A stretch of DNA of 64,000 bases from Klebsormidium nitens. Taxonomy: Eukaryota; Plantae; Klebsormidiophyceae. Both the position numbers and the translations under genes were made by a program. Of the stretch, positions 25,301 through 51,404 are shown one piece after another; the stretch's first letter is position 1; each line of letters starts with the position of its first letter. Under the pieces are notes generated by a model that did not search any database, was not told where the DNA came from, and worked only from the letters and a program-made list of their open reading frames with translations. The stretch spans positions 62,001 through 126,000 of the forward strand of contig DF237117.1 of assembly GCA_000708835.1 (NCBI GenBank), read 5' to 3'.

Positions 25301-28300
25301 GGCTCGAGCTGCAAGAGCTCTGCACCAAACTGGAGGACGTGAGTGTATTCCCACTTTGCCACTACAGCGAGTTTGCTGCCGCTGATTTCCTCCTGTCGGG
25401 CTGTATTCCCCCCTGTATTCCCTCCTGAGATATAGATGCGACACCGCGAATCGATGCCGATCTCGGCTTGCTTTCGAAGTATTTTGGAGTCACCTCGACC
25501 GATCGCCCATCCTTTCAAAGAGTTACCGACGTCAGTATCAGGTCACAATCTGGGACAGCCACGTGCAGCCGCTGGAAAGGAGATGTTACCGACGAAAGGT
25601 TGCGGAGAACAAACTGTCAAAATTTTCGTTTCTGCGTGTGGTGAGACACGAGTAAGCAATCGTACTTGGATCTGATTCGTGCCACCTTCTGACACATGAG
25701 TAGATGAAATATAATGCAGCTGCCAACGCTAGCGCTGGAGCCGCACTCGAAGCGCAAGTTTTTCCACGCGAGCCTGGCTCTCGAGAAAGCACAACAATAA
25801 AAGCTTCTTTCTTCTCCCTCGAATCTCTCGCTCAGATTCTTCTTTGCTTGCTACAATTACCGACGCTCGTGTTAGAACCGCCCCGAATGCGCAACTTTGT
25901 CTACGCAAGCCTTGCGCGCAGGGAGGAAAGACGAACTTGAATAATGTCTGGTGTTCCTCGGTACACTTTCTTGGCAAGGCATCGACTCCTTCGCTTGCTA
26001 CAGATACCGACGCTCGCGCTAGAGCCGCACTAAGTTCGTAACTTCTTGTACGCGAGCTTGGCGCTCAGGGGAACAACGACAAACTCAAACGGCTTTATTT
26101 TCTCCTCTCTCAGTTTCTCGCTAAGGCATTGACTTCGCTTGCCACAGTTGCCAACGCTCACGTTAGAACCGCCCCGAATGCGCCCCTTTTTCCATGCAAG
26201 CCTGGCGCTCAGGGGAGCAAAGACAAACCCAAACGGCTTTGTTTTTCTCTCTCACTTTTCGCTAAGGGACTAACTTCTTTACTTGCTACAGTTGCCGACG
26301 CTCGCCCTAGAACCCCATTGAATGCGCTACTTCTTTTACGCAAGCCTGGCGCTCAGGGGGACAAAGACAAACTCCAAAGGCTTTGTTTGCTCCTCTCTCA
26401 ATTCTCGCTGAAGAGTTATATGTTTTGCTTGCTACAGTTGCCAACGCTCGCGCTAGAGCCGCACTGGATGCGCGACTTTTTCCATGCGAGCCTCGCGCTA
26501 AAAGAGCAAAAGAACGAAGCATCAAAACATACTCAACTAACGAACTAACCAGCTAATCTCTCGCTAAGGCACTTTTTTAACTCTACCCAGTTGCCGACGC
26601 TCGCGCTAGAGCCGCATTGGATGCGCGACTTTTTCCACGCGAGCCTCGCGCTGAAGGAGCAGAAGAACGAGGAGGGCCTCCAGCAGTACCGCGCGCTCGC
26701 GGCCGCGTTTCCGCGCAGCGACTACGTCGTCGCGCAGACCGCCACCGCGCACTACAACCTCCGCCGTAAGCCTTGAAAGTCGATCATCATTCTTTGTCTT
26801 TGATGTCTTTTGTCCGTGTGAGGTCGATTCGCTTCCTTTCGTCTGCTCCTTTTGAGGCGATACTAAGTTCGCTTTGCTTTCCCGATTGCCGACGGATAAG
26901 ACTTCCGCTTCTTGTTTGTTCAGATGCAGACCGACTGCTCAACGTGTCCGGTTAAGCAGGGTTGTGAAAAACATCCTCAGAAAATACGTTATCTGCTTCA
27001 ATGTAGACGACAACCTGGAATGCAAACCGCCAGCGAAGTGCATTGTTCCTTGCAGACCTGGTGGCCATACATGGACACTTCACGTTGGCCGATCGTAGAA
27101 CATCGGCGGTAGCCTGTAGGGTGATACGGAGAGTGTGGGAGCACGACAAGAAGTTCTCCCACCCTTTGTTCTCAACCTCACCCTTTGTTCTCAACCTCAA
27201 TCCCTCGGAAAAGTCTGATCCTAGCAACGTAAAGTTACCGTTCGGAATCATTGCCCTTTTGAGAAACCCTAGAACCCTACGAGTCCATCAAACCCTACAG
27301 TCTTCTTTGTCTTTCTTTTGACAGAGTTTGACGAGGCTCAGGAGCTGTTCGAGCAGCTGCTTGACTCGGAATTTATGACGTTGTTGAAACGTCCGGTACC
27401 CGGCATCGAAAGTTTTCCATCTGGCGATCCTCCCGTTCTTACACAAACCCGGAATTTTACACTAACCCTAAACTAACTCTAGCTAACCCAGAATCTATCT
27501 TTGACAGAGTTCGACGAGGCTCAGGAGCTGTTCGAGCAGCTGCTCAAGTCGGACCCGTACCGCGTCGATGGGCTTGACATCTACTCCAACATTCTGTACG
27601 TCAAGGAGTGCTTCTCGGCGCTCAGCTACCTGGCGCACAAAGCGGTGCTGACCGACAAGTACCGGCCCGAAACCTGCTGTATCATAGGTGGGTAAGAGGA
27701 GCTTCCTCGCCTTTCTCCTTGACTTCTTAAACTTGTTCAACTTTCTCGTGGTCTTAGCTTGAAAAAGCATCAATACCGCATCTGATAGAGGTTGTTGGAG
27801 GAGTGCTTCTCTGCCCTCACTTATCTTGCGCACAAAGCGGTGCTGACCGACAAGTACCGCCCCGAAACATAGGTGGGTTTGAAGCTTGTGTCTTCTTTTT
27901 CCCCTCTTTTTTCGGATCAGATCTACGGGAAGAAAGAAGCAGAAACGTTGAGTTGTGCTTGTCCGCCCTCAGCTATTTGGCGCACAAAACGGTGCTGACC
28001 GACAAGTACCGGCCCGAAACTTGCTGTATCACAGGTAGCTAATTGTTGTTCCCCTCTTTGTGCCTCTGTCGTACCCACTCCTAGGATTATTTCGTTGTAA
28101 AGAAGCCAGAATCGATCTCTGACAGCCAGTATTTTTGCAAGATGCTTGCGTTTCTGCGCTTAGATACCTTGGCACAGGGCTGTGCTAAGATTCAAATTCG
28201 TGGGCCGGGGTCTCTTGCACCGTAGGTGGGTTTGTCATGGTTAAGGGTCTCTCTCTCTCCCGCTTTCGACATGGTAGAGACTTCGTTCTCTTTTCTTTCC

Positions 28301-31300
28301 CCCATGCAAGCTTTAGCCAAATTCGTTTCACCATTGCAGGAAACTACTACAGCCTAAAAGCGCAGCACGAACGGGCCGTGCTCTACTTCAAGCGGGCCCT
28401 AAAATTGAACAGGTGCGAGAGCTTTCGCTCTAGTTCTCGCTAGAAGCGCGCCGTCTCCTGCCGGCAAAGCTGCGCGACTGTCGCCCCTTCTCGCTCACAT
28501 ACTAATGCATAACTTTCTCACTGGATGTCTTTGATGCGTTTTTCCAGCACTACATCTGCCTTCTGCCTACTACCTTTCTGTTGTACTGTACAAACTTTTG
28601 GCCCCTCGCACCAGTTGTGTATGCTGGTCGCAAATTTCGCACGAGGAAGCAAAGCGCTGATCGAGCGGATTAGGATATCTTGATTTCTCAAGTATGTGTG
28701 TTAAGGCCTTCAGGTAGTAACTTTCAATCAGACGGGCCAGTGTGTCCGACTTGCTTTGATGATTTTGCAGGGTGCATTTTCATCTCAAGTTCAGAAAACT
28801 CTTTCGCTTTCGAAAGCAACATGCTAGATCTCGTGTCGTTGCATAGATACATTAGTTCTCACACTCCTTCTCCTAAACCAGTCAAGCCTTTCAGCATTGG
28901 GGTGACACTTGATATTCGCAAATTACTCGTGGGAGTTTGCGTACCAAAAACGGTGTCAATCTTCCCCTGCAGAAACTATCTTTCGGCGTGGACGCTTATG
29001 GGCCACGAGTTTGTCGAGATGAAGAACACACCCGCCGCCATCGATGCTTACCGAAGGGCCGTAGGTCAGATCTCTCCGCTTTTCCTCTCTTCGATCCAAA
29101 TCCAAGCTACTTTGATTACTTTCAGAGTTTCGTATCTCGTTTCTGCAAAGTGTGTTTCTTCTTCTTGCGTTGTTGTTCTCCGATTCACCCCCTGTGCAAG
29201 GACGATGCGTTCTGTGTTCTCTGTTCATCTTTAGCAGCAGGGGCTCTGTCGCTAAGCGACGCGATTTTGCGGAGTCCTTCTCGACGACAATGGTGCCGAG
29301 CCACCTATGCTTGCTTCGCTTGCATTCTTTCCACCTAAATCGGGTTCAGGGGGTCCGCTCTGTCTGTTCTCGTCTCCGTTCGTCCGGTTTGAACGTTCTT
29401 GAACCGAAAGGTTCAAGTCAAGATTCACGACTCTCGAATTCTTTGAGGGACGGTGTTTCCGCGAGATCCTCCGGAAACAAAAGCTGACGACCCTAAACCC
29501 TCAAAAGCTGGCCATTGCAGATATCGACCCTAAGGACTATCGAGCGTGGTACGGACTGGGCCAGACGTACGAGATCCTCGCGATGCCATACTACGCGCTG
29601 TACTACTATCGGAGAGCGACGCAGCTTAGGTAAGTCCTTTGTCGAACCACTGACGAAGAGCATCGCGGTTGCAGTATCTTTTAGACCGAAAAACTTTTCA
29701 AGCAAGGGGAGCAGCTTTTATACTTTGCTTTTTTTGAATTGGAAGAGCAGACTTCTCTTACAAAAGAAAGCGACAGTCTGAGGTGGTTCTGGTTTGAGGA
29801 CGTGCTTTGACGATTTTGCGGCGAGGCCTATACAAACATTTCAAGACATGCTTCCGGGAGTCAGCTACTACCAGAATCCACATTGCTTTGTTGAACGTAG
29901 GAACAGTCTGCACCCTTTGTTCTGAGCTCGGCTTCCACCCGGCGGCACGTTTGTTTCGATCTAGTTGACTTCAGCATTTGCCTTGCCCATGATCCAGATA
30001 TTGCCGACCGGACCGATGTGTGATGGGGCTAGTGGTACAAGAAAACCAGCTTGGCATGCAAAGCGTCCCTATTATGATTATGGAACCTTCTTCGGAACCC
30101 CCCGAAAGAATACGCTCAATGTTCTGATTGCCCAAACCCTATCGTTGACCCGGATTCGACAACGCCTCAAACTAGCACTCTTGCAGGCATGTGTGTGCAA
30201 TGGGCCAGTCTTACGAGAACGAGCAGCGGGGCATGCACGAGGCGGCCATTCGGATCCAAAACCCTCGCCCTGATCTCCACTGTTTGCATCCGTTGCATGG
30301 CCCAATCCCCGTCGTTGAATTTCTTAGCACTATTTTTGCGCAGGCCAAACGATCCGCGCATGTGGTGTGCGATGGTGCAGTGCTACGAGAACGAGCAGTT
30401 GGGGATGCAAGAGGCAGCCACTCGGCGTTACTCAACACACTATCCTATGCCGATGCTCAGGACAACGTTCTAGCGCTGTAAACCAAAGTAACTCTTGAAC
30501 CCATTTTCAGGCCCAATGACCCGCGCATGTGGTGCGCAATGGGTCAGTGGTACGAGAATGAGCAGTTGGGGATGCAAGAGGCGGCCACTCGGCGCTACTT
30601 AACACTCTATCATACGCCAATGTTCAGCATGATGCACGAGCGCTGTAAACCAAAGTACATCTGGATTCCATTTCCAGGCCGAACGACCCGCGCATGTGGT
30701 GTGCAATGGGCCAGTGCTACGAGAATGAGCAGCTGGGGATGCAAGAAGCCGCCATCCGCTTAACTAAAGCTCGTCCTAGATTCTGATTCCAACAACGTTG
30801 CCTAAAGCTTTTGTGGTGGCCGAAACCACATCGTTAACCCTGCGTTAAACCCTCTCATCCTTGCAGGCCGAACGACCCGCGCATGTGGTGTGCGATGGGC
30901 CAGTGTTACGAGAACGAGCAGTTGGGAATGCAAGAGGCCGCCATCCGTTGCTACTCGAAATTCTATCCTATGCCAATGCTCAGTATGATGCATAAGCGCT
31001 GTTAATAAAAGGAATTTTTGAACCCATTTTCAGGCCCAATGACCCGCGCATGTGGTGCGCAATGGGCCAGTGTTACGAGAACGAGCAGCTAGGGATGCAA
31101 GAAGCCGCTATCCGGTGCTACCGGCGCGCCGTGAGCTACGAGGACCGCGAGGGGATTGCGCTGCACAAGCTCGCGCGCCTGCATCAACAGCTAGAGCAGG
31201 TGCGGGGACTGTCGACTAGAATGCGAAATTCCGGGGATTTTGCGCCGGGTTTGAAGAGTCTCAAGCTCCTGGTCCGTTTCTGGGGCGGGAAGCTCAGATT

Positions 31301-33767
31301 TCAGGCATTTGGGGGTTTTAGCTGCTTTTGGGTTGAGGATGTTGACAATGGAGATTTTCGTGAGGCGTTCGTATTAAGGCCTGCGCATCTGATGAGGCAA
31401 GAGGCAATCTATTGCACAGCTATTGGATACTTGTCCCCATTCTAGGACGCACTTGAGATAAGGGCTTGGGGAATGACGTCACAGCAGATAAACACGGCGC
31501 AGCGATGGAGTGTCCTTATCAGAACAGTCAGTTGCTGACGTCACTTTCTGGTGCGTTCGTTGCCAGATGGACGAAGCGGCGCACTACTTCCGGAAGAACC
31601 TCGAGCGGATGGAACAAGACCAGGTGAGCCAACAGACGCCGACTCTTTCCTCCGATCTTTATGTTGCTTAATCCTCATCTCAAAGAAAGCTAACTGCTCC
31701 GCATTTTCTTTTGTGCGCCAGGACTTGTCGGACGGTCGATGCGGTTAAACAAGCGGTTCCTCTTGCCCGCCGTACGCTGCCCTCAAATCGCATACGGGGT
31801 CAATTGAGTATTTTCTGCTTTCCACGGTCTAATACGCCAACACTTGACAGGAGCTCTTCAATTTTACTTGCGCCCAAAAGGGGACACCTCGAACCAGCAC
31901 TGTCACAACGACAGAGACGTTGGCAGACCCTTTGACGGATTACCTTCTCGCAGTGGATTCTCTTCACCCGTTATGTGGTCTCTGCTTCTCGTTCCAAATT
32001 GGGAAGGCTCATAAAGACTGGTAGTTTACCATCTTCCAAAGTTGTTGCGATGAATTTCATAGCAGTCCAATAGGCGTTGCGTAGTAACGGCGCTGCTACT
32101 GGACCGCGATCCGGAAAAGATAAGAAAAAAGGAGCGCATCCAAGCAGAATCCTGTACAGGCCCTGATGTTCCTGGCAGCATACTGCAAGCCACTTGTGAC
32201 GACATTGACCTCAGCGGCTGACATCAGGCAGACTCCACATTCCCTTCAACCATCTTTTCCAACCCTGCATTTGCAGGCCGGCGGGCGCGGCGTGTCAGAG
32301 GCGCTTGTATTGTTCGCAGCGTACTGCAAAGACGACCAGCGAGTCTGTGACATGGGTTCTACTAATTGACGTTAGGCAGAGTTTTACGATCATTTCAACC
32401 AGCTTTCAAACCCTGGCTAACCAGCTCTAACCCTGGGTTTGCAGGCTGATGGGCACGACATAGTGGAGGCGCTGGTAATCCTGGCGGCAAGAACCGTGAA
32501 CGGCAAACTGTGACGTCGGCCTTACGTTAGGCAGAGTTCTACGATTAACCAACTGAAGTTTGAAAAAGTTCAAAACCCTGGCTAACCAGCTTTCAAACCC
32601 TGGGTTTCCAGGCGGACGGGCGCAATGTGGTGGAGGCGCTTGCATTCCTGGAGCGAAGTGTAAAGGCGATTAGCGAATCTATGACAACGGGTTCACCAAC
32701 TGACCTTAGACAGTCTTTTCCAATCCCTTTAACCAGCTTTCAGAACCTGGCTAACCAGCTTTCAAACCTTGGGTTTGCAGGCGGACGGGCGCGACGTGGT
32801 GGAGGCGCTGGTGTTCCTGGCCGCGTACTGCAAGAACCAGGGCCTATTACACGAGGCGGAGCAGTACTGCACCAAGCTCATGGACTATGGGGCCCCGGTT
32901 AGTAACTGCTCTTGTTTTGTTGCCTGGTTTCAAAGAGTCGTCCTTGTTACGCCTCTCTCGTTACTCGTGAAAGGTGGTTGCATTTTCGGTAAACAGGGCG
33001 TGCTGCATGAGGCTGAGCAGCACTGCACTCAGCTCTTGAGGACCCTTGCAAGTCGGACGTTCTCAAGAGCTTGATTCTGTCGTGGCTCTGGCCCTCCCTT
33101 ACGCCCTCTCCACATCTTGAGGTGTTCAACATTCGGAAAAAGTAGGCCGGTTGTTGCGCTTTGCGAAAACCTCAGTACAGGGGAGTTGAAGTTGGCCGCT
33201 TCTTTCCGAACCACTTTTCTTACTACGCACTTCGTTCTGCTCTTTTCGTTCTCCCTTGTGCGGAGCAAGGCGTCTTGTCAGAAGTAACTCTTACAAGCTT
33301 GTCTTCTCCTTCCTAGACCGCATACCAGTCGGTCGCTTCGTGCACTGAATGTCAAAAAGCTGTTATAATTGCTTCGCTGCCGATTTCGCTTCAGGCGTGA
33401 AGCCGGGCTGCCAAGGTAGAGCTCGATTCTGCCAAGCTGGAGGATTGGCTGCAAACCCACGTGCGCTTAGGTATTAGCTCAGAAAAGCTTGGCTCGTTTT
33501 GAGCGGCAACAAGCAGCGCTCAGTCTGACGCCGACTTCCGTACTCGGAATCCGACAGCGCTTGAGAAATCTTGTCATGCCCGACATGAGAATATGATTCA
33601 TAGCAAGCTCAAACACATCTCATCTTTCTTACCGATCTGACCCCTGATCCGAAACCCGTCTCTTGCAGGAGAAGGAGGAGGCCAAGGCAATCTTGCGAGA
33701 GATCCGGAGCGTCCAAGAGCACGGCGTTCTATCCCCACATATGGACCTCGAGAGTTATACGCCTTGA
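22384..33767 (+). CDS. APC8: Anaphase-promoting complex subunit 8 (CDC23), TPR protein, ~574 aa, 13 exons
   Basis: Exons 22384-22472, 23535-23820, 24746-24894, 25206-25338, 26591-26765, 27508-27687, 28340-28412, 28973-29064, 29521-29629, 31034-31199, 31567-31623, 32781-32897, 33669-33767 join in phase (1725 nt). Diagnostic peptides: [90 protein letters not shown]. Confidence 0.95.
23097..23534 (+). repeat. ~95-bp tandem repeat containing APC8 exon 2 acceptor + first ~15 exon nt (3 copies)
   Basis: CTAACCCAG|GGCTGCCGAGCAACT...CCACCGCCGAAGCTCACAA units with exon-like starts at 23174, 23270 and 23365; real exon at 23535. Confidence 0.9.
24331..24745 (+). repeat. Echo array of APC8 exon 3 5' end (3 copies, ~140-bp period)
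   Basis: Near-identical copy at 24607; progressively decayed copies at 24473 and 24331; real exon at 24746. Confidence 0.8.
25720..26590 (+). repeat. Echo array of APC8 exon 5 5' end (6 copies, 137-153-bp period)
   Basis: Starts at 25720, 25857, 26004, 26148, 26292 and 26438; real exon at 26591 ([21 protein letters not shown]). Confidence 0.95.
27324..28230 (+). repeat. Echoes flanking APC8 exon 6: one acceptor-side copy and three donor-side copies
   Basis: TTGACAG|AGTTTGACGAGGCTCAGGAGCTG at ~27325. Copies of [27 protein letters not shown]|GT at ~27799, ~27955 and (decayed) ~28140. Confidence 0.85.
30010..31033 (+). repeat. Echo array of APC8 exon 10 5' end (5-6 copies, mostly 167-bp period)
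   Basis: Starts at 30187, 30344, 30511, 30678 and 30867 (weaker ~30010); real exon at 31034 ([29 protein letters not shown]). Confidence 0.95.
32160..32780 (+). repeat. Echo array of APC8 exon 12 5' end (3-4 copies, 167-169-bp period)
   Basis: GGGTTTGCAG|GCGGACGGGCGC-like units start at 32277, 32445 and 32612; real exon at 32781. A downstream echo of the later part of the exon lies at ~32995. Confidence 0.85.
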
Positions 33768-37099: not shown

Positions 37100-38285
37100 T
37101 GAGCGAATGGCGATCTTTCGAGCAGCTATTGGAATTTGAGTAGTCTCTGTTCTATCACGCACTCCTTTTAAGGACACAACGAGAAGCTTGGAGAACGACG
37201 TTACGAGAAACGAAAACCACCATGTGACGAAGTGACTTCGTCGTACTATCCGTCCCTGACGTCACTCTTGTTGGTCCCTCGTCGCCAGATGGACGAACCG
37301 GCGCACTACTTCCGGAAGATTCTCGAGCGGATGGAACAAGAGGCGAGCCACCAGACCCGGCTCTTTCTTTCCGACCACTTGTTGCTTAGTACTCATCGGC
37401 AAGCGCGAAATTAGTTGCTTCCAATCTTGGATTGTGCGCAAAAATCTGTGCGACGGGCAATGCTGATCGGAACCGAGACTTCTTCTCATCCGCTTTAGTT
37501 CCGCGTACGTAGATCATCTTACTACAATTTGGTTTCTGCTTTTCGGACGCCAAAAGTATCTTGAAATCTGAGCCAGGGTCGTCCAACAGCGGCGCTCGAA
37601 AGGCGATATCTCGAAGCGGTAGTCAGTACGGAAGAGACGTCAGCAGACCCTTTGACGGTTTGCTTCTTCGCAGTGAACCTTTATATCACCCGCTATCTGT
37701 CCTGCTTCTCCGTCTGAAAGCGACAAAACTCCCAACGATCGTCGTTCATAAACTTGCAAGGTCATTGCGATGGAGATCGGCATAGCAGGCCGACGGGCCT
37801 GACGCAAATGAGGCGTACTACTGCAAAGTTGACCAGCGAATTTGTGACTACTTCTGCTTTCGCGGCTGACATCAGGCAGAATCCACGCTCACTTTGATAA
37901 TCACTTTTGAAATCTGGGTTTGCAGGCCGAATGGCGTGACGTGGTGGAGACGTTAGCAAAAATCGTGAATAGCAAACAATGACGTCGGATTTAGAATCCG
38001 AAGTTAGGCAGTGTTTAGGTTTTTAAGAATCATAATAACAATCCCAGACCCTGGTTAACTAGCTCTCAAACCCTGGGTTCAGGCTGACGGGCGCTGGCAT
38101 CTTTGGCGACGTGTTGCAGAACGGCCAATCTGTGACGTCCGCCTAACGAGCGGACGTTAGATAGACTTCACGTCCCCTTTAATCAGCTTCAAATACTAAG
38201 TTTGCAGGCGGATGGGCGCACTGGTGTTCCTCGCGGCTTACTGCAAGAACCAGGGGCTTCTGCATGAGGCGGAGCAGTATGTGGT
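37100..38285 (+). pseudogene. Decayed segmental duplicate of APC8 intron10-exon11-intron11-exon12 (source ~31400-32870)
   Basis: Exon 11 copy ATGGACGAACCGGCGCACTACTTCCGGAAG at 37289 with a damaged donor. Intron sequences align (e.g. GAGACGTCAGCAGACCCTTTGACGG at ~37635 vs ~31917). Exon 12 copy at 38208-38280 carries a 14-nt deletion. Confidence 0.85.
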
Positions 38286-39454: not shown

Positions 39455-42400
39455 CTACCAGTATTCCACCGTTACCGCTTTCGTGCGGAGATACTCATCA
39501 AGCGCCTCTTGTCCAAGATCCTTTCCAAACCCGGACTGTTTCCAACCGCCAAAGGGCGCGGCAACGTCCGTTTTATTGTACGTATTGACGTAAACCGTTC
39601 CCGCTTGCAACCCGTCAGCAACTTTTAGCGCCTTGTTAAGGTCCTTAGTGAAGACGCCTGACGCGAGGCCGTATTCGGTGGCGTTCGCCCGTTTCAACAC
39701 CTGGCACGACGAGAGAAAATTCAGGAAGTAACTAGACTGGGCAAGCATTCGTATCAAGCTCAGATTGAACCTCACGACTGGTCGGCCAACAGCAACCTCA
39801 CCAGTGATGGCAATCTTTGGACACGACAGACGTAATATTTGAAAGTTCCCGAAACTCCTGGAAGAGGACGATTGCGGAGGAATCACCCGTGATTTAGCGA
39901 TGACGTCTGTTACTGATGGCGTTCAGTTCTTGTCAGGAGCAGCGCTGCAAACTTGCTCGTAGCAGCCTCTACAATTGGCAGCACCGAACCTACGAACAGA
40001 GTACCCGCAATTCGGGATTGACTCATGACTTTGAGGGTCCAAACGTGCACTTCAACTCCACATAAAAATTCTCACCTTGTCAAATTACAGACAGAAGCTT
40101 CTCAACCTTGAGGTTTCGACGTCGAAGTCATCCGTCATCCACTTTCAAACAAGTGCAACAATGTTTCCTACGGGGTTACAAATGCACTTTAAAACGGTCC
40201 CCCGCCCCCCCCGGAATGTTGCCGGTGTCCGTAAGCCGAAAGATCCACCGTCCCTTGCTTTGATTGAAGCCTCACCTTACCCGTCCTCCGTTTATTAAAG
40301 AATTGCAGTAGTGTTTTCCGGGGGGGGTAAAATGCAGATTGAAAGGTTCCCCCTGCGGAAACGTTGCCGGTGTCCGTAAACCAGAAGACCCACCGTCCCA
40401 TGCTTGGTTAAAGCCTCACCTCATCGAGAGTCTCAAACTTCGAGATCAGCATAATCGGCCCGAACGACTCCTCAGTCGCTGCAACCGTGCCGTCTTCCAC
40501 TCCGGTTATGACCGTAGGCTCCAGGAAGAAGCCCCGCGTGCCAACACGTTTACCGCCGTAGACTACGGTTGCCCCCTCTTTCACCGCCGTCTGCACAGAG
40601 GAGTCCTTGGGTGTAACTTGGGAAGCACTTTTGAAGGGTTTACAGGAAGTTGGTTACGGATACTTGCGCCCAATCGGAACAACCGAATTGGCAGCGCCAC
40701 ACTGCAGGGGTGCTGTGGCGGCGCTCCAATCGTCTGCTACTTTTCCGAGCCACACGTGACTGTTCTTTAGTGCGTTGAGGTGGAGCCGGTAGCGAGTCTG
40801 ATGGAAGCGAATGACCGTAGCGAATGGGGGTTGGGGACAGGTTCAGTGCGTTTCCCCCCGAGGAGAAGATGGACACATGCCGACACGCTTGCGCTTCAGC
40901 CTAAGGTGGCCCATTTGCATTTGTAGCTAGAGTACACAATACAGTCCTCGTCTAGAAACAGACTCTTTGCCACTCCTGTTTAAACAGGGACAGATCGATA
41001 GTCTGATGTTGAGACTGTAACGAAGATGAACGTCTCCTACTCATCTTCCTCCTGTAGAATCCATAGGAGGGGACGATAAGCGATGCTTACCTCAATATAC
41101 GCCACCAGCTTGTCGAAGTGCGCCTTATGGTTCTGCGGCCCGTGCACGGTCGTGCGGTCCAGCGGGTCCCCGATCTTCATCTTCCGGACGTCCGAAACGA
41201 CAGCTTCTACAAACTTGTCGTGTACGGAGGATTCCACAAACACGCGTCCGGCGGCGATGCAATTCTCGCCCTTGTTGAAGAAGACGGCCTGGCCGGCTTG
41301 TCGAACGGCCCGGTCGAAATCGGCATCCGCAAAGACGATGAGCGGGGATTTACCGCCAAGCTCCAACGAGACCTGGGATAAGTTGAAGAAAGAACTTCAA
41401 TCTAGACATCGTTTACGGTTTCGAGATTTCAGGGGTTTGAAGAGAAGCTCTACAATCGAAGAAGACGGCTTGACCAGCTTGCCGAACGGCGCGATCGAAG
41501 TCGCCGTCTGCGAAGACAATCAGCAAAGACTTGCCCCCGAGCTCCAATGAGACCTGCGATGTTTTGAACAAAGAAAGTCAAGCTAGACCATCGTTTGTTG
41601 TTTCGACTTTTCAGGGATGTAAAGAGAAGCTCCAAAATCGAGGGAGACGGCTTGACCCGCTTGTCGAACGGCGCGGTCGAAGGGCGTCTGCGAAGACGAT
41701 GAGCGGGGACTCGCCACCTAACTCTAAAGAGACCTACAAAGAAAATTGGGACTTTCAAAATCAGTCAAAAGTACCAGTATTAATCTCCATTTTTGAGGGC
41801 CTGACCCGCTTCCCGAACGGCACGGTCGAAGTCGGCGTCTGCGAAAAGATAATCATCGTGGACTTGCCGCCCAGTTCCAGCGAGACCTGCGAAGCGTGAA
41901 CGTAGAGCGTTGGGGTTTGGGAGGTGAAGACTCTCAAGTTGACTGATGTTTGAAGGCCTTCAAATGGCGCGGTCGCTTGCGAGGACGATCAGCAGAAAAC
42001 GGCAGTTATCGATTTGTTGAAGTCAAACAAAATCGTGCACCATAAATGCTAGGCTCAAGCTATTTAGTTTCTGAACTGGTAAGTCTTGTGAAAGTTGCGG
42101 GCTGACCACGCGGCACGTTTAAAGTCGGCGGCTGGGGCGATAAAGAGGGAAGCGTTGCACTTAGATGCATTCGGCTCGAAAAGACGGACGGATGCGCACA
42201 GTCCTAGAGACACCGGATTTCTGTTGGACCTCGAAAACATGAGAGAGCAGACTCAAGCACCCAAGCGAAACGCTCAGAGGAAGTAGACATGTTCGGAGCA
42301 GATTCAAGCAATGTGGCTCAGTGTGCTTCAGATTCAAGGATAGAAGCCAAGGGTTTCCACGTTTTTCAAGCCACGTGCCTTACTGCAAAAAAATCAGGTC

Positions 42401-45400
42401 CGAGCATGCTATCGTCGGGGTAAAAACGTTCCTGAGAGCCAGACAATTGATTTGTTTTCTGCCCGAACTACAAGAGGTTGCGGTGTGGCTCTTGCAGTCA
42501 GTCCGTTCTGCATTCGATCTGCACCCCTCACCTTCTTGAGGGTCTTCGCAGCGCCCCCCATGATCATCTTTCCGACGGGCGTCGACCCGGTGAAGCCGAC
42601 TTTCCGGATCGAAGGGTGGTCGGTAATCGCATTCCCGACCACACTCCCCGCGCCAAGAACCACGTTCACAACACCGGGGGGAAACCCCGCCTTGAGCGTC
42701 AGCTCCGCGAACTTGAGCGCCGTCAGCGGAGTCACCTGGGCAGGAGAGGAGCTGACGTCAGCGGTGCCTATGCTGGCGATATTATTTTCGTCGTGGTCAG
42801 CATGAGTGGAAAGTCAACAACGTTCACGACCCCGGCATGGAACCCCGCCTCGGGCGTCAGCTCCGCGAACTTGAGCTCCGTCAGCGGAGTCACCTGGGCA
42901 GGCCAGGTGCTGACGTCAGCGGTGCACATGCTGACGACAATTTGCATTTTGGCGACATCGGGAGAGGACGTCATGGCTGCTAATGCTGATGTTGGGCGCT
43001 GCCTATGCTGGTAAGTAAGGGTGGTGCTAAGAATGCTTATGGTCTTAATCACCTCCAGATCAGCTCCAAAATAGCTTTGCCGTCTGGCATATGTTTGTGA
43101 CAGAACCAGGGGCGGGAAGACGTAATTGGAAGTGTTGGCCGGCGGAAAAACACAAGCCAGCCTTATAATACCAGGACAACAAAGGCTGATAGCGTAGCAA
43201 ACAGCTCTGTACAGTCATTGTGATCAAGACCTTAGACAAAGTGCTCCTACTCTCAGTCACACGCGTCCCTCGCAACATCAGTCAGAAGGGTCTTTCATGT
43301 TACGTTCCTGGGCGCTTCTTAAATCCTCGCTTATGCGACATTTTACCAATCATTTCACCGGAAATTCGCATTCGACTGCCAGATTTTGCACCAGAGGCAG
43401 ACAAGGAAGGGGCAACGTTGAAGCCACTCCTTTCTTCTTCTCCATATTGTCAGCAATTCGGGTTCTGTAACTTCGCTGAGTCACAAAGCCCACCTTTATA
43501 CGCAGAAAGAAAGTGTTGATTTTCGCTCACCTCCGCTGGTTTCAACACGAGCGTATTCCCCGCCGCCAGGCACGCAGCCGCCTTCCACGCCACCATCATG
43601 AGGGGGTAATTCCAGGGCACAATCAACCCCACCACGCCGATGGGCTCTCGTCGCGTGAAGCAGAGGTTTTTGCTCGGGCGGGAATCGTTGATGGGGATCG
43701 TGCGGCCCTCGATCTTGTCCGCGAGGCCGGCGAAATAGCGGAACGTGTCGACGGACATGCCCACGTGGGTCTTGACCGCGAGCGTATAAACAGCGCCTGA
43801 ACAGAAACGTAATGCAGAAGTATTGGGGTTTCGTTCTTGAAGTGTTGTGTTTGAGTATGCTTGTAAAGTCAGACCGGCGAAGTAGCGGAGCGTGTCGATG
43901 GACATGCCCACGTGGGTCTTGACGGCGAGCGTATATACAGCACCTGACAAAAAACGCAATGCGGAGGTTTCAGGTTTTCGATGTTTGTAAGCGGATATGG
44001 GAGCTTTTAGTTGTGACAAGACCGGCAAAGTGGCGGAGTGTGTCGACGAATATGCCCACGTGGGCCTTGACGGCGAGCGTATAACAGCGCCTGGAAGGAA
44101 GTACACGCTTGACATATCTTAGGTTGGGTATTTTAGGTCAGTAAACAGGTTTTGTTTGTGTGGCGGGGCTGGCAACGAAGCGGAATGCGTCGACGGACAT
44201 GCGCACGTGGGTTTTGACAGCGAGCGTGTACACAGCGCCTGCAAAGTCACACGCGTGTTCTCAAGCTTGGTGCGGACTTTTATTTTTGTGGTACAGGGAG
44301 ACTGGCTGAATGTCGAAATAGATTCACGGCAAGTCTCGACAGCAAGTTACAGCACCTGATAGATCGATAAAGGCACAGCCTTTGAAATTATCTGAAGTTT
44401 CGGGTATCTTTTCAAACTTGATTTCAGACTGGTTGGGTTGACGAGGCTGGGGGAAAACCGGAATACCTTCATGGACGTGCCTGCACAACTTTTGCCAGTG
44501 AGCACGTACACTTCACCTAGACACACACTTCCAAGATCCGAGATTGTGCGGCTGGTAGGCGTAAATCAGAGTTTGCTTGCGAGACTGGCGGGGTGGCAAA
44601 ACATGCTCAAAAAATGCTCTTCAAGTCAATGAACCAACAGCTACAAGAGCTGTCTGCTCATCCCCGCGCTGAACCTGGGCAAGACACGTCATAGTGGCTG
44701 ATAGGCTCTCGCCTCCGTACCTGAGTCCAAGCTCTCGATCGTTGCCAGCTCCTCCTTGTTCTGCTCCATCAGATCGGCCAGCTTCATCAGCAACTTGCCC
44801 CGGTCGCGTGCGCTGATTTTCCGCCACTCGCCGTTCTCGAACGCATCCTGAGATAAACGGAAAAGTCCTTCTTCGTGCCACTTTCGGTACTACTTCAATC
44901 ATGTCTCTTCTCAACTTCCTCTGTAGAATGCTTTGTTGTGGTCCCGCGCAAGAAGAAACTGCAGGACTCACTCGGCAAGAATGTCGAACACATTTCGAAC
45001 ACGCGTTTAAGTGGGAAGCCTCTGACCCGGATGCCATTACAAGGAGGGTTTGACTGGCACAGACGTCAACGGCTGGGATGGGTCGCAAGTATCTTGTTCC
45101 ATATTGACCACCTAACGACAGAGTTTCTACTTTTGGGGCACTCTAAAACACTTGCATGCAACCTGACCGTTTCTCCAGTCTTGCTAACCCGGTCGATGAT
45201 GCGATCGAACAAAGCTAAGGGCGATCCGCTCACCTTTGCTGACGTCACAGCTCCGTCGACGTCCGCCGCGCTCCCGTCCGCCACGTCAACAATCACCTCC
45301 TCTGTCGCAGGGTTTATCGTGGGCCGGGTTTTCCCCTCTGACCCGTCCACAAACCTCCCCCCGATAAAGTGCTGCACTGGCAAACTGAGCTCTAACCCGT

Positions 45401-48400
45401 TCGCCCTAACCTTAACCGTCTTATACTCTGCCGCGCTGGATTTCGTTTTCAGAACCGTTTTGACGAAGTCGCCGTATGTGGGTGCCCGGTAGATGTCCTC
45501 TGGGTCAATTACTAGGCCTACGCTAGACTGCAGGTTTTCTACTAGGCGGGTTGCGTCGAGGGAACCAGCGCCTTGGGCGAAGAAGTCGGTGTCCGAGGAA
45601 ACCTGCGGGAACGGGGGTTGCATGTTAGGAAATGTGAAGTCAAGCAATTTGCAACATTCCCTACGATGGAAGGTTTTTGAACGCATGTTGTCAAACGGAC
45701 CGACTTCTTGTGCAAATCATCAGTTTCTGGAGGTATCGCTGCACAAGAATTGGTAACATTCTCAATTCCGATGGAGCGAAGATTCAACGCTAGCCCTCAA
45801 GGGCTAGGCTCGACTGAGATTCACCAATATGAGCTTTGCTTTGACGGCACAAGGTACAACAACAGGCGGTCTCCGTGCGCGATCGACGATCCAAGGAAAA
45901 GTAAGGTCGGGGCTGGTATAGCTACTTCAACGGCTTGGGATAGGGATGGGTGCGGAGCAGACAATCACGGCCTCAATCACGGTTTTTAGCATTGGAAACG
46001 CTTCGTTGCCAGATTGAGAGGTACCTTGAGGAGGCGTATGCCACGTTCAGGGCAAGGTAAAGTCCGACGCCGAAACTACAAAAAGCAACCCCCTCCGCCT
46101 CACCGTTTCCACCCCCAATATGTCCTTCCACACCGCCTCAATCGCCGCCCGCGCCGCCGCTTCGTCCACTTTCGGGGCCTCCTTTTTCCCGCCCCCCTCG
46201 TTGCTACTCTCCCCAAGAAGGTCTGCGGCCGGCAAGCTTTTCCCGCCCACTTTCACTGACGTCACCAACAGTTTCTCGCCGTCAGAGCCGGTCAGCACAA
46301 GGCCCTGCCCGGTGACAAACCCCGGGTGCTTGCTCCCCTCGATTTCCACGGGCTTTCCATCGGTGGGAATGCCCCCCGACGGCGTTCGAGTGGAGCCGTA
46401 AAGCGTGGTTTCCTACCATTTGCGAGAGGAGAAGATTGAGTTGCTGATTATCTTGCCTTCGGAAAAGTTAACGACGTATGCACCTTCCCGGTTTCTTGTC
46501 TTGCAAGCTTCATAATTCGGTTGGAAAGAGCTGCGCAAGCTGGTGCTAGAAGTGGCGCGTCGTGCTGTGCTTTCAGCGCTAAAGGCAACAAGAACTCGTC
46601 ACACCACGGCGGCTCGATCGGAAAGGATATTGCAGGGTCTTCATGCAGAAAAACTCCGTGTTTCTCTAAACCAGAAATTGAAAGTCAGCGCAAGTATGGA
46701 AGTGAACTACACGTTGGTTAGGTTCAACCAAACTAACCAAGTTGGGCAGACTCCCATTGCTCTCGATTGTTTGTAGGGCCGACTTTTAACACTAAGCACC
46801 CGGGGGACGGGTGTGGTTACTTTGGGGGTTAGGGTGGGTGCGGGTGCGGAGCGCGAACTATCTCGACTTAATGTTTTTGATTGAGATGCCCGGGGCTTAT
46901 GTATCCAAGAACTATCTCCTGTTGATACAATCTTGAGTAACCATTATGTTGGGCATCGGTCCAAAGCGTTGCGTTAGTCTGCCGTTAGACGAATACCTGG
47001 GAAAATCTCCGTTGGATATCTGGTCTGTATCGAACATTATCATAAGACCCCTTCAGATTCAACATTCAGGTCTGGTTTTGTGCGGATTAAGTTTGCACTT
47101 TATCTGGTCGTTAATCAAGGGCCGCTCTGTTTCTCACACGTGTTGGCTCCAGCTTTTCGAGACCTCTGTAACACGTTCGTTTACCTCAACTCGGTTCGTG
47201 CGAAAAAGCTTGCGGATTGCCTGGCCGTTAACCACGGCCCACGTCCCGGGCACTCTGTTGTTGCCCCAGGCAAAGTCGCGGGTCTCCTTTTAAACCCAAC
47301 TAACCGCGCATTCAAACATATGTGGAATCGTGCGGGTTAAAACTTCAACTCACCTGGCCGTTGACTACGGCCCACGCCCCGGGCACTCTGTCGTTCCCCC
47401 GGATGAAGTCGTGGATCTGCTGACCGGTCTTGTCGAAATCAATGCGGGCCTTAACGGGGTCCTGCAAAGATGGGTAATACCAGGTTGAGACTAAACTACA
47501 CTCGCTGAGGAGTCAACAAGCATCCTACTCAGATTTATAAGTCGATTGCTGTCGGTTGGAGGTCCGAAGTTGTGACGATTTCGCTGGGTCAGCATTTCAG
47601 AGCTTGTGACAGCTGGTGAACGGAACTAACAGTCGATCTCAACAGGAGCTTCAGAGCTGCAACTTGGGGGTTGCACCGAACGCAACCGAAAGAAAGGACC
47701 GGAAAATTCATGACGTCTTCACAACAACTCCTCGAGGGCTCAGCCATCGTGACTGTAGCCTAAAGCAAATGGTCAAGTGCGAAGCTCCCCAGCCGAAGCG
47801 CGACTCTGCAATCAGTAAGCACTGAGAGATCCCTCATCTCGCAGAAAGTAAGGATGTTGGAGAGAAGAAGGAGGTATCTCTGACCTTCCAAAGCGGATCG
47901 TAGGTCGCCCCTTCCGTCGGCTGGACGATACGGGGGGCTTCACCGGCTGCTATGAGGTCGACCGCATCCCCGACCGCTTTCACGCCCTCAGGGAATAGGA
48001 ACCGCTTATCTGTTGGCGGAATGGATATGATATAAGCGATAGCATAGGTTATGAGCGGCTACGGCGTTTCCAAGCTGCTATCAGGTCGACCGCATCTCCG
48101 ACCGCCTTGGCCCCTCCGGAACAAGAAAACGCTCATCTGCAGGGGAAAGGGGAATGCATATAAGCAGATGCAAGGCTATGGAAAGTGCGTGCGAGAACCC
48201 AGCTGCTATCAGGTCGACCACATTCCCTCGGGGAAGATGCCCATCTGCGGGGCAGGATGGGTAAGCTTAAATGAATCGCATAAGCCAGGTGCGGATGCGA
48301 CATTGTCCAGTCGATAGTATGATCCGACCACCTTGACCCCGTTGGGAACACGAACCGCTAATCTACAGGAGAGGGGAACCAATCCATTAAAGACCGCGAA

Positions 48401-51400
48401 AAATTTCGGATTTAAGCAAGAGCAGCTGAAGGCAAGAGCGGGCAGATACTTGAGCTTGAGAACGAAGCAATTGGAGGAAGGACTTCCAAAACCAGAAAGG
48501 GTCGACGGTGTTGGCCGCACGGAACATCTGGCATTCGAATGCGTAAGTTTGACATCTTAAAACGGTTGTCGTTTCGTTCCCAAAGTCGTATCCCCAACGC
48601 ATAACGAACCAGCAACTCTTTTTGATCTCCGTTCAATGAGCGATTCGAAGGCGTCGACCGAGCTGACGTCTGTGCTGCGATATATCTGTTTCGTGTACGG
48701 AGTACTGCAAGTAGTGAAGCTGCGACACCTTGATCTGGAACTTTTGGGACTTGAAACCCTTCACATTACAGAGATTAAGGCAATTGTCGTTCACCACAAC
48801 GTCCGTGTCGCACTGCAAACCAGCAGTGTGTTTCAAGAAGTTTATATCTCAAGTTCAAGAAGCTTGGTTACTCGAAAATAAACAAACATCCAGAGGTCTG
48901 ACACTCACAGAGCGAGTTCACTGTGTCGTCCGGCTCAACGTCCGTCTCGCGCGTCAACAAAATCGGTCCGGTGTCAAGTCCGTCGTCCGCCCAAAACACA
49001 GTCAGCCCCGCCTTCTTATCGCCTTCCATGAGCGTCCAGTTGATAGCTGACGCGCCACGATGGCGGGGCAGAATGCTGGGGTGGTAGATGATGCCGCCAT
49101 ACTTGTTGCTGTCAAGGAGCTGCAAAAGAGAAGCGATCCCCGTTTCATTGTGAGCATTTCCGATAGTGAATGCGTTACGGTGCTGCGGGGGTGATGCTCG
49201 GGTCGTAAACAATGCCGCCATACATGTTGCTGTCAAGCAACTGCAGAGGTGAGTTCCAGACTCCTTGAATCGAAGCTCTGAAACCTCGATCTTCGATCAA
49301 CCAAGGCGATTAGTGTGCATTCTCTCACGGGAGATTCGGATTGAGAAAGGATGCTCGGGCGGTGAACGTGCCGTCATACTTTCGCCTCGAGCAACTTTTA
49401 TAGGAGAGGATGATTCCTGGGAAAATTCTGAATTCAAATGCTTTCTTTCATGTACCTCATTTCCTAAAGGTGTATTGTGCCGCGAGGCCTGAATTCCATG
49501 CAGGTATGAATCTGGTCCGTTCATTGGCTACGTAAAGGCACTGATCTAAGTTTCACTACCAGGCAGGGCCTTTTCTTAGGGCCAAACCCCTTTCGAAGTT
49601 ACCTTGCTTTTACACAAATCTTTAGGAATCAGAACGGCAGCTTGTGGCCTTACTCCTACGTTGACAGAGATTGACGACCTCTACAAACTTTGGGTGGCGA
49701 CCAGGCAAGCCATCACCAAGACAATGTAAAAGGAACCAGCCAAGACTCCATCTCTGACAACTGCAGTCACCGTTTGCGGTGCCAAGAGAACAGAGCAATT
49801 TCCTCTTCAATTATGCGGACTGCCACGCGGTTGCACATGTTAAAAAGCCGAACAAAAGTTGACGGCGCACTGCTTACATCGACAGGGATGAACTGCGTGA
49901 CGAACGCCAGCACGCTGAGGTCAGCGCCTACCGACTTGAACTGCTGCTCCACCTCAGGGAGCGTGTGGCCACCGTCCTGAGAAAAATGGTCTGAGCTTGG
50001 TTATCTCCTGATTAGCTACAAATTAGCTCGTGGTTAGCTAGAGGTTAGCTCCAGGTTAGCAAGAGGTCAGCGACATCCCAAGGGAAAGTGGTAGAAGTCA
50101 GCAAACGGGTAGCAGAGCAGATAAGTGAAGGTTAGACGGACAGGCCAATTCAAAGGCTTCTCCACTCAACTTCGCAAAATAGGTCAGAAACAGAAGTTTA
50201 CAGAGGGTTAGCAAAGAAGACACTCAACACAGAGAGGGGTTGGCAGCAAGGGTAACCAGGCAAGATGACCCACGCAGACCAGCCAAGCTGTCCCAAGCAC
50301 ATCGCTGGCCATCTATGCCACTTTCTGAAGACATTCTGCATCCCCTCTATCCCAGATACTACCCTCTCAACCACCTGAATTTCAAAACGCGATGATCGTT
50401 ATGCCCTTGCGTTGCCTTCCAATGAGCAGAATGGGTGTCGCAAAGCGAGAAATCTGGCCAGTCTAGTGGGAATCAACTCCACTTACCAGGAACTATTTGA
50501 AAGCACGCATATTAAGAGATTTGTCATATTGCAGATGACCAACCTCATTTCAGCTGTCTGCATTGGTTCTTACGGCAGCCATCAATGCTTTGAAAGCATG
50601 AAACAGATTTGCAAAGGTACCAACGCTTCAAGAGCATGCAACATTCTTGCAGATGTATCTGGACTGGTGTTGCAGTCGAAAGAGTGGCTCGAGTAAGGTC
50701 GGCTGTTCATGAATGTCAATGATTGGGCGCTCTGATTAAGAAGACGCCGTGGAATAATATGGTTTGGTACTATGCATCTAACACAACTTTTGCCAGCCTC
50801 CAATCTTAGCAACGACCAGTCTTTTGTGGTAAACCTTGCAGTATTCATTTTGCCACAAAGTATGCACAAACTGCAGCTTTCTCAGCTATCCAGGATTTTC
50901 ACCACCAACTATCACCAACAGCATAAGTCTATGAAGCATCTGAATTTCATTTTCAGGATTCTAGAACCAACAGCATTGAAACTTATCAAAAAGAAAGACA
51001 GGAAGATGCTGCTGGGGCCAGATGTCATCCAGGAAAGCTTTCCAATCAATTGAAGAACAATCAGATAAAGAACTGCAGAACGCGACCAGCGAATGAGACA
51101 CCTATCTCTGCAGATAGTCATACGAAGACAGATTGGTCGCTATGCAGCGGCCAATGACCACAATTGAGCAGGCAAAGAAGAAAGTAATAGAACGTCAATA
51201 GCTCACCTTCTTCAGAGCCTTCCAGCGCGGAAACTTGAACACCTGCAGGTTGTCTGCCTTTGCTGCGGTGGCAAGCGGGTCCTCCCTTCCCTTTGCGTCA
51301 GGGACCGTGAAGACTCCCACAATCTCATGGCCTCTCTTCTTCAATTCGTTAAAAACCTCGGCACCGAAAGCAGACTGACCAATGACGGCGACCTTGAGGC

Positions 51401-51404
51401 CCAT
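39455..51404 (-). CDS. ALDH1L: 10-formyltetrahydrofolate dehydrogenase, ALDH1L type (formyltransferase/hydrolase + acyl-carrier-like + aldehyde dehydrogenase), ~904 aa, 13 exons
   Basis: Exons 51404-51207, 49976-49878, 49119-48909, 48009-47885, 47461-47354, 46412-46104, 45602-45234, 44847-44721, 43796-43531, 42735-42532, 41372-41091, 40590-40420, 39700-39455 join in phase (2715 nt). Motifs: [11 protein letters not shown]; [19 protein letters not shown]; DDGLDTGP; [15 protein letters not shown] (phosphopantetheine Ser); PWNYPLMM; ELGGKSP; [13 protein letters not shown] (catalytic Cys); [24 protein letters not shown]. An alternative in-frame ATG lies at 51437. Confidence 0.95.
40200..40419 (-). 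repeat. Donor-side duplication after ALDH1L exon 12 (~140 bp)
   Basis: TTGCCGGTGTCCGTAA...CCACCGTCCC..GCTT..AAGCCTCACC occurs at ~40217-40277 and ~40362-40420. Confidence 0.75.
41373..41990 (-). repeat. Echo array of ALDH1L exon 11 5' end (3 clear copies)
   Basis: Minus-strand starts at 41553, 41733 and 41886; real exon at 41372 ([32 protein letters not shown]). Confidence 0.95.
42736..42893 (-). repeat. Echo of ALDH1L exon 10 5' end
   Basis: CCCAG|GTGACTCCGCTGACG unit at 42893 vs real exon at 42735 (158 bp apart). Confidence 0.9.
43797..44520 (-). repeat. Echo array of ALDH1L exon 9 5' end (3 clear + 2 decayed copies, ~147-bp period)
   Basis: Starts at 43943, 44090 and 44238 (weaker ~44355, ~44517); real exon at 43796 ([25 protein letters not shown]). 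Confidence 0.9.
47100..47353 (-). repeat. Donor-side echoes of ALDH1L exon 5 3' end
   Basis: Copy of AACGACAGAGTGCCCGGGGCGTGGGCCGTAGTCAACGGCCAG at ~47221-47280; weaker copy at ~47100-47135. Confidence 0.75.
48010..48545 (-). repeat. Echo array of ALDH1L exon 4 5' end (3-4 copies, 108-127-bp period)
   Basis: Starts at 48136, 48244 and 48362; real exon at 48009 ([22 protein letters not shown]). Confidence 0.8.
49120..49400 (-). repeat. Echoes of ALDH1L exon 3 5' end
   Basis: CTGCAG|TTGCTTGACAGCAACATGTATGGCGG at ~49240 vs real CAG|CTCCTTGACAGCAACAAGTATGGCGG; a decayed copy lies at ~49395. Confidence 0.7.

Follow-up and report, generated by a model that had tools for sequence, protein, structure and literature searches.

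Partial copies of ALDH1L exon 11 in an intron of Klebsormidium nitens differ from the live exon mainly at silent sites

The window analyzed here, a stretch of 64,000 nucleotides from contig DF237117.1 of the alga Klebsormidium nitens, carries on its minus strand (39455-51404) the gene ALDH1L, an animal-type three-domain gene (formyl transferase, carrier and ALDH) for 10-formyl-tetrahydrofolate (10-formyl-THF) dehydrogenase. The intron before exon 11 of this gene contains tandem copies of the first part of that exon, which we call echoes. The divergence between these copies and the live exon has been filtered by the genetic code, and in the nearest copy nearly all differences are silent. The copies are not used in the ALDH1L main message today, and they now decay neutrally. 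We tentatively suggest that these silent differences go back to other functional versions of exon 11, which may have been brought in by recombination.

The array fills the 3' half of intron 10 (Tandem Repeats Finder (TRF) period 181, 2.4 copies). A unit of ~181 bp joins ~85 nt from the 3' end of intron 10, with the AG, to the opening 32 codons (96 nt) of exon 11; such units follow each other head-to-tail, centered on the splice junction of the gene itself, and their starts are 181, 180 and 153 nt apart. The first-pass annotation of this DNA had placed the copies at 41553 (e1), 41733 (e2) and 41886 (e3) and had reported small indels in the latter two; both statements were confirmed, each copy lying right behind an AG and the indels being a 2-nt deletion in e2 and a 2-nt insertion in e3. 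The three copies stop at a common 3' position. None is a complete exon: of the 94 codons, homology reaches no farther than codon 32, a GT is missing behind it, and what follows as spacer is the 3' end of the intron itself. The spacers i1 and i2 are 79% identical (18 mismatches in 85 nt), and e2 shares one identical block of 17 nt with the live exon. Differences at codon positions 1 and 2 grow with distance from the live exon (3/64 in e1, 4/62 in e2 and 6/60 in e3), as does decay in general, with indels in e2 and e3 and a fourth copy that can hardly be aligned. The live exon itself has the acceptor cccag/GTCTCG at 41372 and the donor GAG/GTAAGC past 41091, and the top PDB match of its product is ALDH1L1/10-formyl-THF dehydrogenase (E 1e-39).

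Over the 32 codons that align without indel, the live exon and e1 have 12 identical codons, 18 synonymous differences and 2 non-synonymous differences (Pro to Leu and Ala to Gly), which reproduces the earlier count. At codon positions 1, 2 and 3, this pair differs 1, 2 and 18 times, a third-position share of 18/21 (0.86). The corresponding numbers were 3, 1 and 14 for e2 (14/18) and 6, 0 and 13 for e3 (13/19), while the three copy-copy pairs gave 4, 3 and 10; 6, 2 and 10; and 8, 0 and 11. The first two Leu codons illustrate the pattern and are spelled as first described: TTG/CTT in the live exon, and TTG/CTC, TTA/TTA and CTG/CTG in the copies. Random synonymous respelling of 32 codons with the codon usage of this gene predicts 18.6 third-position mismatches. 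Since 18 were observed, the e1 pair is saturated at third positions, and the description of the copies as near-saturated holds.

The null model was a simulation in which a copy evolves neutrally next to a selected exon (omega 0.05), run with 400,000 replicates for each setting, divergence times of 0.05-0.8 and three mutation models, including 10-fold CpG and 2-fold GC mutability. For such a dead copy, the expected third-position share was 0.43-0.53, compared with 0.86 in the e1 pair. Counts as extreme as those observed (18 or more third-position and no more than 3 other differences) had a probability of 2.5e-6 or less (the maximum across times and models), a value that is to be read with the facts that the comparison has only 32 codons and that pairwise counts inside one array are not independent. 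The same model fitted the single copy on the acceptor side of exon 10 (42893..42816), where third-position and other differences were 5:5. Within the exon 11 array, changes found in one copy alone were neutral-like (4 third-position to 11 other); changes found in the live exon alone were 6 to 0. The excess lies in third positions that subsets of the units have in common in mutually incompatible patterns, or that have three to four states.

A codon-aware census of the window, with frames verified by translation, gave 14 arrays and 44 copies. Among the third-position differences of the 44 copies, transitions and transversions were 61:83 at 4-fold sites and 60:14 at 2-fold sites (P=3e-8), where a transversion alters the amino acid. 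Copies whose positions 1 and 2 had decayed little gave 34:4 at 2-fold sites. Where a CpG of the live exon had been lost in a copy by transition, the third-position member had changed in 33 cases and its partner in 15. The GC/AT direction of the differences was nearly symmetric (56 vs 41), and the GC content of third positions (GC3) was 0.76 in copies and 0.80 in live exons. The contrast between 2-fold and 4-fold sites, the unequal CpG loss and the kept GC3 show that a bias of position or base composition alone does not produce such patterns. Four mutational candidates were ruled out. Positional mutation bias (GC/CpG-rich third positions, strand asymmetry) conflicts with the 2-fold/4-fold contrast and the 33:15 CpG counts, and directional GC3 decay in the copies with the nearly symmetric changes and the similar GC3. 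Junction-localised hypermutation was rejected by a between-species third-position divergence that is flat with distance from exon ends, and universally fast synonymous sites were rejected by cases such as ALDH1L exon 10, where the copy decays at positions 1 and 2 and third-position divergence is low. A hand count in the exon 11 array showed that G/C sites change ~3.5 times more at position 3 than at positions 1+2.

In the set of 44 copies, third positions had diverged from the live exon by about 0.3, however much positions 1 and 2 had decayed (intercept 0.29+-0.03, slope 0.2+-0.2). In copies without any such decay, 12-30% of third positions and 28-33% of spacer sites were already different; these zero-decay copies look "born different".

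When the nearest copy of each array was compared, ALDH1L exon 11 and five arrays in the neighboring gene APC8 (together 24.4-41.9 kb) had 44 third-position to 7 other differences. The eight remaining arrays (four in ClC, one in a WD-repeat gene, and those of the ALDH1L exons at 47.4, 43.8 and 42.7 kb) had 38:44, equal to the null (Fisher P=3e-6 between the groups). The APC8 arrays alone had 26:4 (P=7e-5). The silent-only effect clusters in one region and one lineage. It had been proposed that the exon 11 pair would be a chance outlier if echoes matched a neutral simulation genome-wide. Most arrays of the window, and all arrays of the related alga described below, do match it; the exon 11 array is not an isolated outlier, as five APC8 arrays nearby behave alike.

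The APC8 exon-10 array is the clearest of these. Its five copies encode a (nearly) identical 29-residue peptide; compared with the live exon, they have 0-4 differences outside third positions and 7-13 of 27-30 third positions changed, and pairwise within the array, 5-13 of 27-30. The live exon matches three different copies block-wise, over its first 32 nt, the next 24 and the next 17. States unique to one copy of this array were about 11 at third positions vs 1 elsewhere (hand count), while strict copy singletons across the APC8 arrays were neutral-like (27:38). In the APC8 exon-5 array, the nearest copy alone is protected and five farther copies look neutral. This array (25717-26670) has a two-unit superstructure with TRF periods of 144 and 288, and its copies e3 and e5 are close relatives that differ in a neutral pattern (4/22 third-position, 7/45 other), which indicates that dead-to-dead duplication happens inside arrays. 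In the ClC exon 4 array (8402-9061), the nearest copy had 5 third-position to 2 other differences and the second copy 10:5, and the dead-copy model fits the whole array.

The splice AG is retained in 30 of 33 copies. Over about 18 arrays and 60 units of the whole window, the most similar unit pairs were 85-88% identical, and no unit was less than about 8% diverged from its neighbor; the copying process seems to have been recently inactive, or active in bursts. The window also contains a decayed partial APC8 duplicate at 37186-38279 (parent 31464-32866, 64-84% identity), in which the exon-12 echo array is duplicated as well. The exon-12 sequence of this duplicate encodes 21 identical residues with 11 nt differences in 67 aligned nt, and in its exon-11 copy, 3 of 19 amino acids are changed.

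RNA data were searched for use of the copies. In the Logan contigs of four RNA runs, positions 41091..41370 were covered, and the sole junction leads from exon 10 (42533) to the live acceptor at 41372, skipping 1159-1160 nt with GT..AG on the minus strand. No contig of these four runs joins exon 10 to any copy acceptor, although contigs can miss rare isoforms. RNA depth was 170 on the exons vs 2.8 (1.7%) on one unspliced fragment over the copies, and most RNA runs hold just the exon share of the words of the ALDH1L array (0.23). Cryptic use of the copies in transcripts, one of four candidate explanations given in the first-pass annotation, was thus not seen for ALDH1L in the contigs of these runs. 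We also tried in-frame use of a copy through cryptic donor/acceptor pairs, GA-AG or GC-AG introns, 102-nt TPR-sized exons and recursive splicing, and rejected all of them, as the frame was never kept. In APC8, many RNA runs contain 0.8-0.9 of the words of the exon-10 array region (30150-31250, mostly intronic), among them one in which only the exons of ALDH1L are present. Intron retention, copy-acceptor use and intronic polyadenylation are possible sources of this signal. The spacers of the APC8 exon-10 array contain TGTAA / AATAAA-like motifs. Exact look-ups of open reading frames (ORFs) for RNA contigs with APC8 copies found none on record.

A Klebsormidium-like alga in the JGI metagenome 3300060284 served as outgroup and control. 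It also has a three-domain ALDH1L with identical exon structure, which means that the gene is neither a contaminant nor a recent transfer into the K. nitens strain. The exon structure of APC8 likewise agrees between the two algae. The relative has its own echo arrays at several identical junctions, with a period of 179 in the exon 11 array. Introns and spacers of the two algae cannot be aligned (spacer similarity z<2), and orthology of the arrays was rejected on this ground; the APC8 exon-10 array is missing from the relative except for one decayed copy. The third-position share of the relative's copies was 0.47 in both ALDH1L and APC8, which fits the null and shows that the analysis itself does not create the bias. 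Between the species, third-position divergence was 0.42, or 76% of saturation, and it was flat along exons (0.42-0.45 from edge to center) and not raised overall in the copied segments. With this outgroup, which is close to saturation at third positions, the distance in ALDH1L exon 11 was 16/32 for the live exon vs 15-18 for the copies, and in APC8 exon 10, it was 12/29 vs 10-13; the live exon shows no acceleration. A 544-residue ORF with a reverse-transcriptase domain (PF00078), probably a retroelement, lies downstream of the APC8 gene in the relative (18120-19754 of Ga0590114_0004101). A search of metagenomes for further relatives by conserved ALDH motifs gave none above 71% identity among the matches listed, and the protein search found one close relative per exon and no more. 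The relative's contigs are a useful outgroup for the whole echo question.

Table 1. Positions of the ALDH1L exons, intron 10 array and APC8 arrays in the window, with the outgroup contigs (a slash in a motif marks the splice site; ratios are third-position to other differences of the nearest copy)
Feature	Position	Strand	Remarks
Exon 10, ALDH1L	42533..42735	-	donor AAG/GTGAGG
Intron 10, ALDH1L	41373..42532	-	1160 nt, spliced out in a single piece; RNA junction
Live exon 11, ALDH1L	41091..41372	-	94 codons (282 nt); translation, PDB match, RNA contigs
Copied segment of live exon 11	41277..41372	-	first 32 codons, peptide ending ...AVFF; alignments with copies
Spacer i1	41373..41457	-	final 85 nt of intron 10, ends in live acceptor
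Copy e1	41458..41553	-	96 nt, without indel, AG retained
Spacer i2	41554..41639	-	aligned to i1
Copy e2	41640..41733	-	2-nt deletion, frameshift; AG retained
Spacer i3	41734..41794	-	shortened; aligns only in part to i1 and i2
Copy e3	41795..41886	-	2-nt insertion, frameshift; final two codons missing; AG retained
Spacer i4 and heavily decayed fourth copy (~41990..41940)	41887..41995	-	weak local alignment, score 24
APC8 array	24607-24793		2:0
APC8 array	25721-26670		6:0
APC8 array	27601-28186		6:1
APC8 exon-10 array	30187..31121	+	five copies of first 29 codons plus live exon; 9:1
APC8 array	32158-32830		3:2
ALDH1L orthologue of the related alga	Ga0590114_0000702, 133 kb		93% amino-acid identity in exon 11
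APC8 orthologue of the related alga	Ga0590114_0004101, 46 kb		

For the cause of the silent-only pattern, two explanations that respect the code-aware filter remain, namely inheritance and selection in place, and we rank the former slightly higher; what is left is divided among the less probable explanations discussed below and ideas that were not considered. In the tentatively preferred case of inheritance, the copies would be ordinary members of the tandem splice-junction echo arrays of K. nitens, now unspliced and decaying neutrally, and the copies and the present live exon would descend from different functional versions of exon 11. These source versions may have been diverged alleles, homeologues or a since-lost paralogous copy, which would have drifted apart at synonymous sites under protein-level selection before the array was assembled. 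Homology-anchored recombination or template switching could then have set the versions side by side in a single ~18-kb stretch that reaches from APC8 into the 3' part of ALDH1L. We infer the donor versions, their nature and the recombination step. The intercept of 0.29 at zero decay of positions 1 and 2 supports this reading, since copies of this kind were born different, and the neutral-like private changes and the two frameshifts support neutral decay after inheritance. It is further supported by the equal distance of live exon and copies from the outgroup, by the limitation of the effect to adjacent K. nitens arrays and its absence at the orthologous loci of the relative, and by the decayed APC8 duplicate, which has a synonymous-only exon copy in the same stretch. 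The shared, conflicting, block-wise third-position patterns are like those of recombinants of a few diverged spellings, and the lack of units below about 8% divergence is more in keeping with episodes in the past than with copying that still goes on.

Capture from diverged functional homologues had been one of the candidates of the first-pass annotation, and it fits the results best, but several points weigh against it. No donor sequence was found, and the relative in 3300060284 is not the donor, because its spacers cannot be aligned and its live exons resemble the copies no more than they resemble the live exon of K. nitens. The three to four states at several third positions among the units require more than two source versions or repeated events. 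To our knowledge, K. nitens is regarded as haploid, and sex has not been observed. The spacers i1 and i2 are only 21% diverged although the third positions of the live exon and e1 are saturated, and this reading requires i1 to have arrived with the unit of e1 and not with the live exon. In a tree-like reading of the exon 11 array, the excess shrinks: changes at positions 1 and 2 are 2-3-fold too few on the copy lineages (P about 0.002, hand count), and this deficit, not the 6:1 ratio of the raw pair, is then the anomaly. Finally, the regional clustering of the synonymous arrays is known from one 64-kb window.

Selection in place, which we regard as slightly less probable than inheritance and as doubtful in itself, assumes that splicing once used the duplicated acceptor, so that translation continued in frame from exon 10 into the copy, which was then an alternative or a terminal exon and gave a truncated isoform. 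Partial intronic copies without a donor would then have been held under protein-level purifying selection for a long time, over 32 codons in ALDH1L, where selection ended and decay followed, and this may be continuing in the five APC8 arrays. It is consistent with a constraint that starts exactly at the copied AG and stops where homology to the live exon stops, with the AG kept in 30 of 33 copies, and with the copy-unique states of APC8 exon 10 (about 11 vs 1). The presence of the APC8 array in RNA (0.8-0.9 of words) and the absence of the ALDH1L copies (0.23) would fit a rule that protected copies are those in RNA, and the numbers are coherent if the spacers are partly constrained (spacers 0.3, third positions 0.25, others 0). 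However, the copies have no donor, no copy can be connected in frame with the remaining part of the exon, and the products would be truncated proteins with junk tails, with no evident benefit in two unrelated housekeeping genes. The four RNA runs have no copy-acceptor junction and a copy depth of 1.7% of the exon depth; strict copy singletons are neutral-like even in the APC8 arrays (27:38), and the APC8 and ALDH1L copies of the relative are unprotected. Long independent selection also predicts private differences, yet the variable sites are mostly shared between units. The first-pass inference that each echo diverged under protein-level selection therefore stands in part: divergence beyond the dead-copy null (P <= 2.5e-6), the 2-fold/4-fold contrast and the 33:15 CpG counts speak for a filter at the protein level, while the copy-private changes (4:11), the two frameshifted copies and the absence of RNA use of copy acceptors speak against selection on each copy. 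An unlikely alternative is that the full exon 11 was once doubled and both exons were used alternately under selection, after which the upstream copy was cut to 96 nt and its remnant amplified three-fold. The common 3' end point of the three copies, the derived states that all of them have and neither live exon has (codon 15 GCA, codon 27 GGT) and their about equal private decay (8, 8 and 9 changes, hand count) would be expected of such a history, and tandem exon duplication with alternative use is common in general. Nevertheless, there is no trace of the other 186 nt or of a donor, the two-fold position-1/2 deficit on the copy lineages persists after the presumed truncation, and APC8 exon 10 is left unexplained, where units truncated at a common point still differ synonymously from each other. 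As 282 nt is a multiple of 3, both exons could be included in frame, and nothing would have forced alternate use; in this genome, partial copies that are centered on a junction and have this size are the rule, which makes a special origin unparsimonious.

We also considered that the copies are successive snapshots of the exon and that the synonymous sites of the live exon were sped up, by selection to escape silencing or by local hypermutation, as two further candidates of the first-pass annotation had it; we find this improbable. The live exon has six private third-position changes and none elsewhere, nearly all of them GC to AT as for mutation in place, and position-1/2 decay increases with distance from it (3, 4 and 6), both of which such a ladder explains. 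The relative-rate tests (16/32 vs 15-18 and 12/29 vs 10-13) contradict synonymous hypermutation of the live exon, which is no farther from the outgroup than the copies, and between-species divergence is flat (0.42-0.45) and not raised overall in the copied segments. The distances along the array are non-additive and star-like or reticulate rather than ladder-like, the third-position excess is larger than the at most 1.7-fold that a ladder predicts, and no single rate ratio fits (e.g., ALDH1L exon 10, with 0.10 at positions 1 and 2 vs 0.19 at third positions). If divergence were selected for, the free sites of the copies should be exploited too, but they stay unchanged. Equally improbable in our view is that all of these are ordinary dead copies and that the exon 11 pair, helped by mutational heterogeneity, is a chance or selected extreme among thousands of pairs. 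The null does fit most arrays of the window (38:44) and all arrays of the relative (0.47), copy-private changes are neutral-like, and the most extreme case, of 32 codons only, was picked. It is opposed by the P <= 2.5e-6 of the pair, by the independent bias of five neighboring APC8 arrays (26:4, P=7e-5), and by the 2-fold/4-fold contrast and the CpG partner test, which exclude positional mutation bias. Least credible of all, and very improbable, is that the copies serve as spare parts whose changes are exposed to selection through recombination or gene conversion with the live exon. Identity blocks between live exon and copies (17 nt with e2; 32, 24 and 17 nt with different copies in APC8) and a constraint that drops with distance from the live exon are in line with it. 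But exchange frequent enough for effective selection would also wipe out the near-saturated synonymous differences, and it would remove third-position differences at least as fast as others, so that the opposite bias is predicted; if the deletion products never fix, the load should be equal for an intact and a mutated copy, with no selection between them.

Copies of exon edges in introns are expected to be junk from birth, and a subset of those described here bears the usual signature of translated, functional sequence. No normal protein can come from the copies with that signature, and the main message lacks them. A low dN/dS of a fragment vs its parent gene is, on its own, no evidence that the fragment has a function. 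If selection in place were true, ribosomes would translate echoes, for example as the terminal exons of truncated isoforms, or echoes would be checked against the genetic code in some other way. If inheritance were true, the arrays would be scars left when functional versions of a gene, by then strongly diverged, recombined in an alga that is considered haploid and asexual. Either reading would alter the understanding of genome-wide echo arrays.

We found no paper on such arrays in Klebsormidium in the literature, and the arrays were compared with known systems. Like plain decaying relics of splice junctions, the copies keep the AG, are unspliced and decay with distance; unlike them, they diverge in a code-aware, synonymous-only way. 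Dead-on-arrival duplicates and pseudogenes compared with a selected parent have a pairwise dN/dS near 0.5. The private changes of our copies are likewise position-blind and disabling indels are present, but the third-position share of the pair is 0.86 rather than the expected 0.43-0.53. Tandemly duplicated, mutually exclusive alternative exons were reportedly described by Kondrashov and Koonin in 2001 and by Letunic, Copley and Bork in 2002. They resemble the echoes in being tandem exon copies in a neighboring intron with intact acceptors and mainly synonymous differences, whereas here only 96 of 282 nt are copied, there is no donor, no isoform occurs in the RNA contigs, and two copies are frameshifted. 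In chickens, immunoglobulin pseudo-V segments form an array of pseudogene donors kept for gene conversion. Such arrays share with the echoes the unexpressed partial copies beside a functional segment and the patches of identity; in contrast, the silent sites of exon 11 are near saturation with one identical block of 17 nt, which means that exchange between copies and live exon must be rare, and housekeeping genes have no call for diversification. A further parallel concerns the splice site itself. In intron 7 of human F7, a 37-bp minisatellite has a first unit that spans the exon 7-intron 7 boundary, and its pseudo splice sites are unused (PMC1557585). As in our array, a tandem repeat starts at a live splice junction, and the multiplied splice site is ignored by the spliceosome (PMC1557585). 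The F7 minisatellite differs from the echoes in that it lies on the donor side and has short units with almost no coding part, and codon-level conservation is not at issue there.

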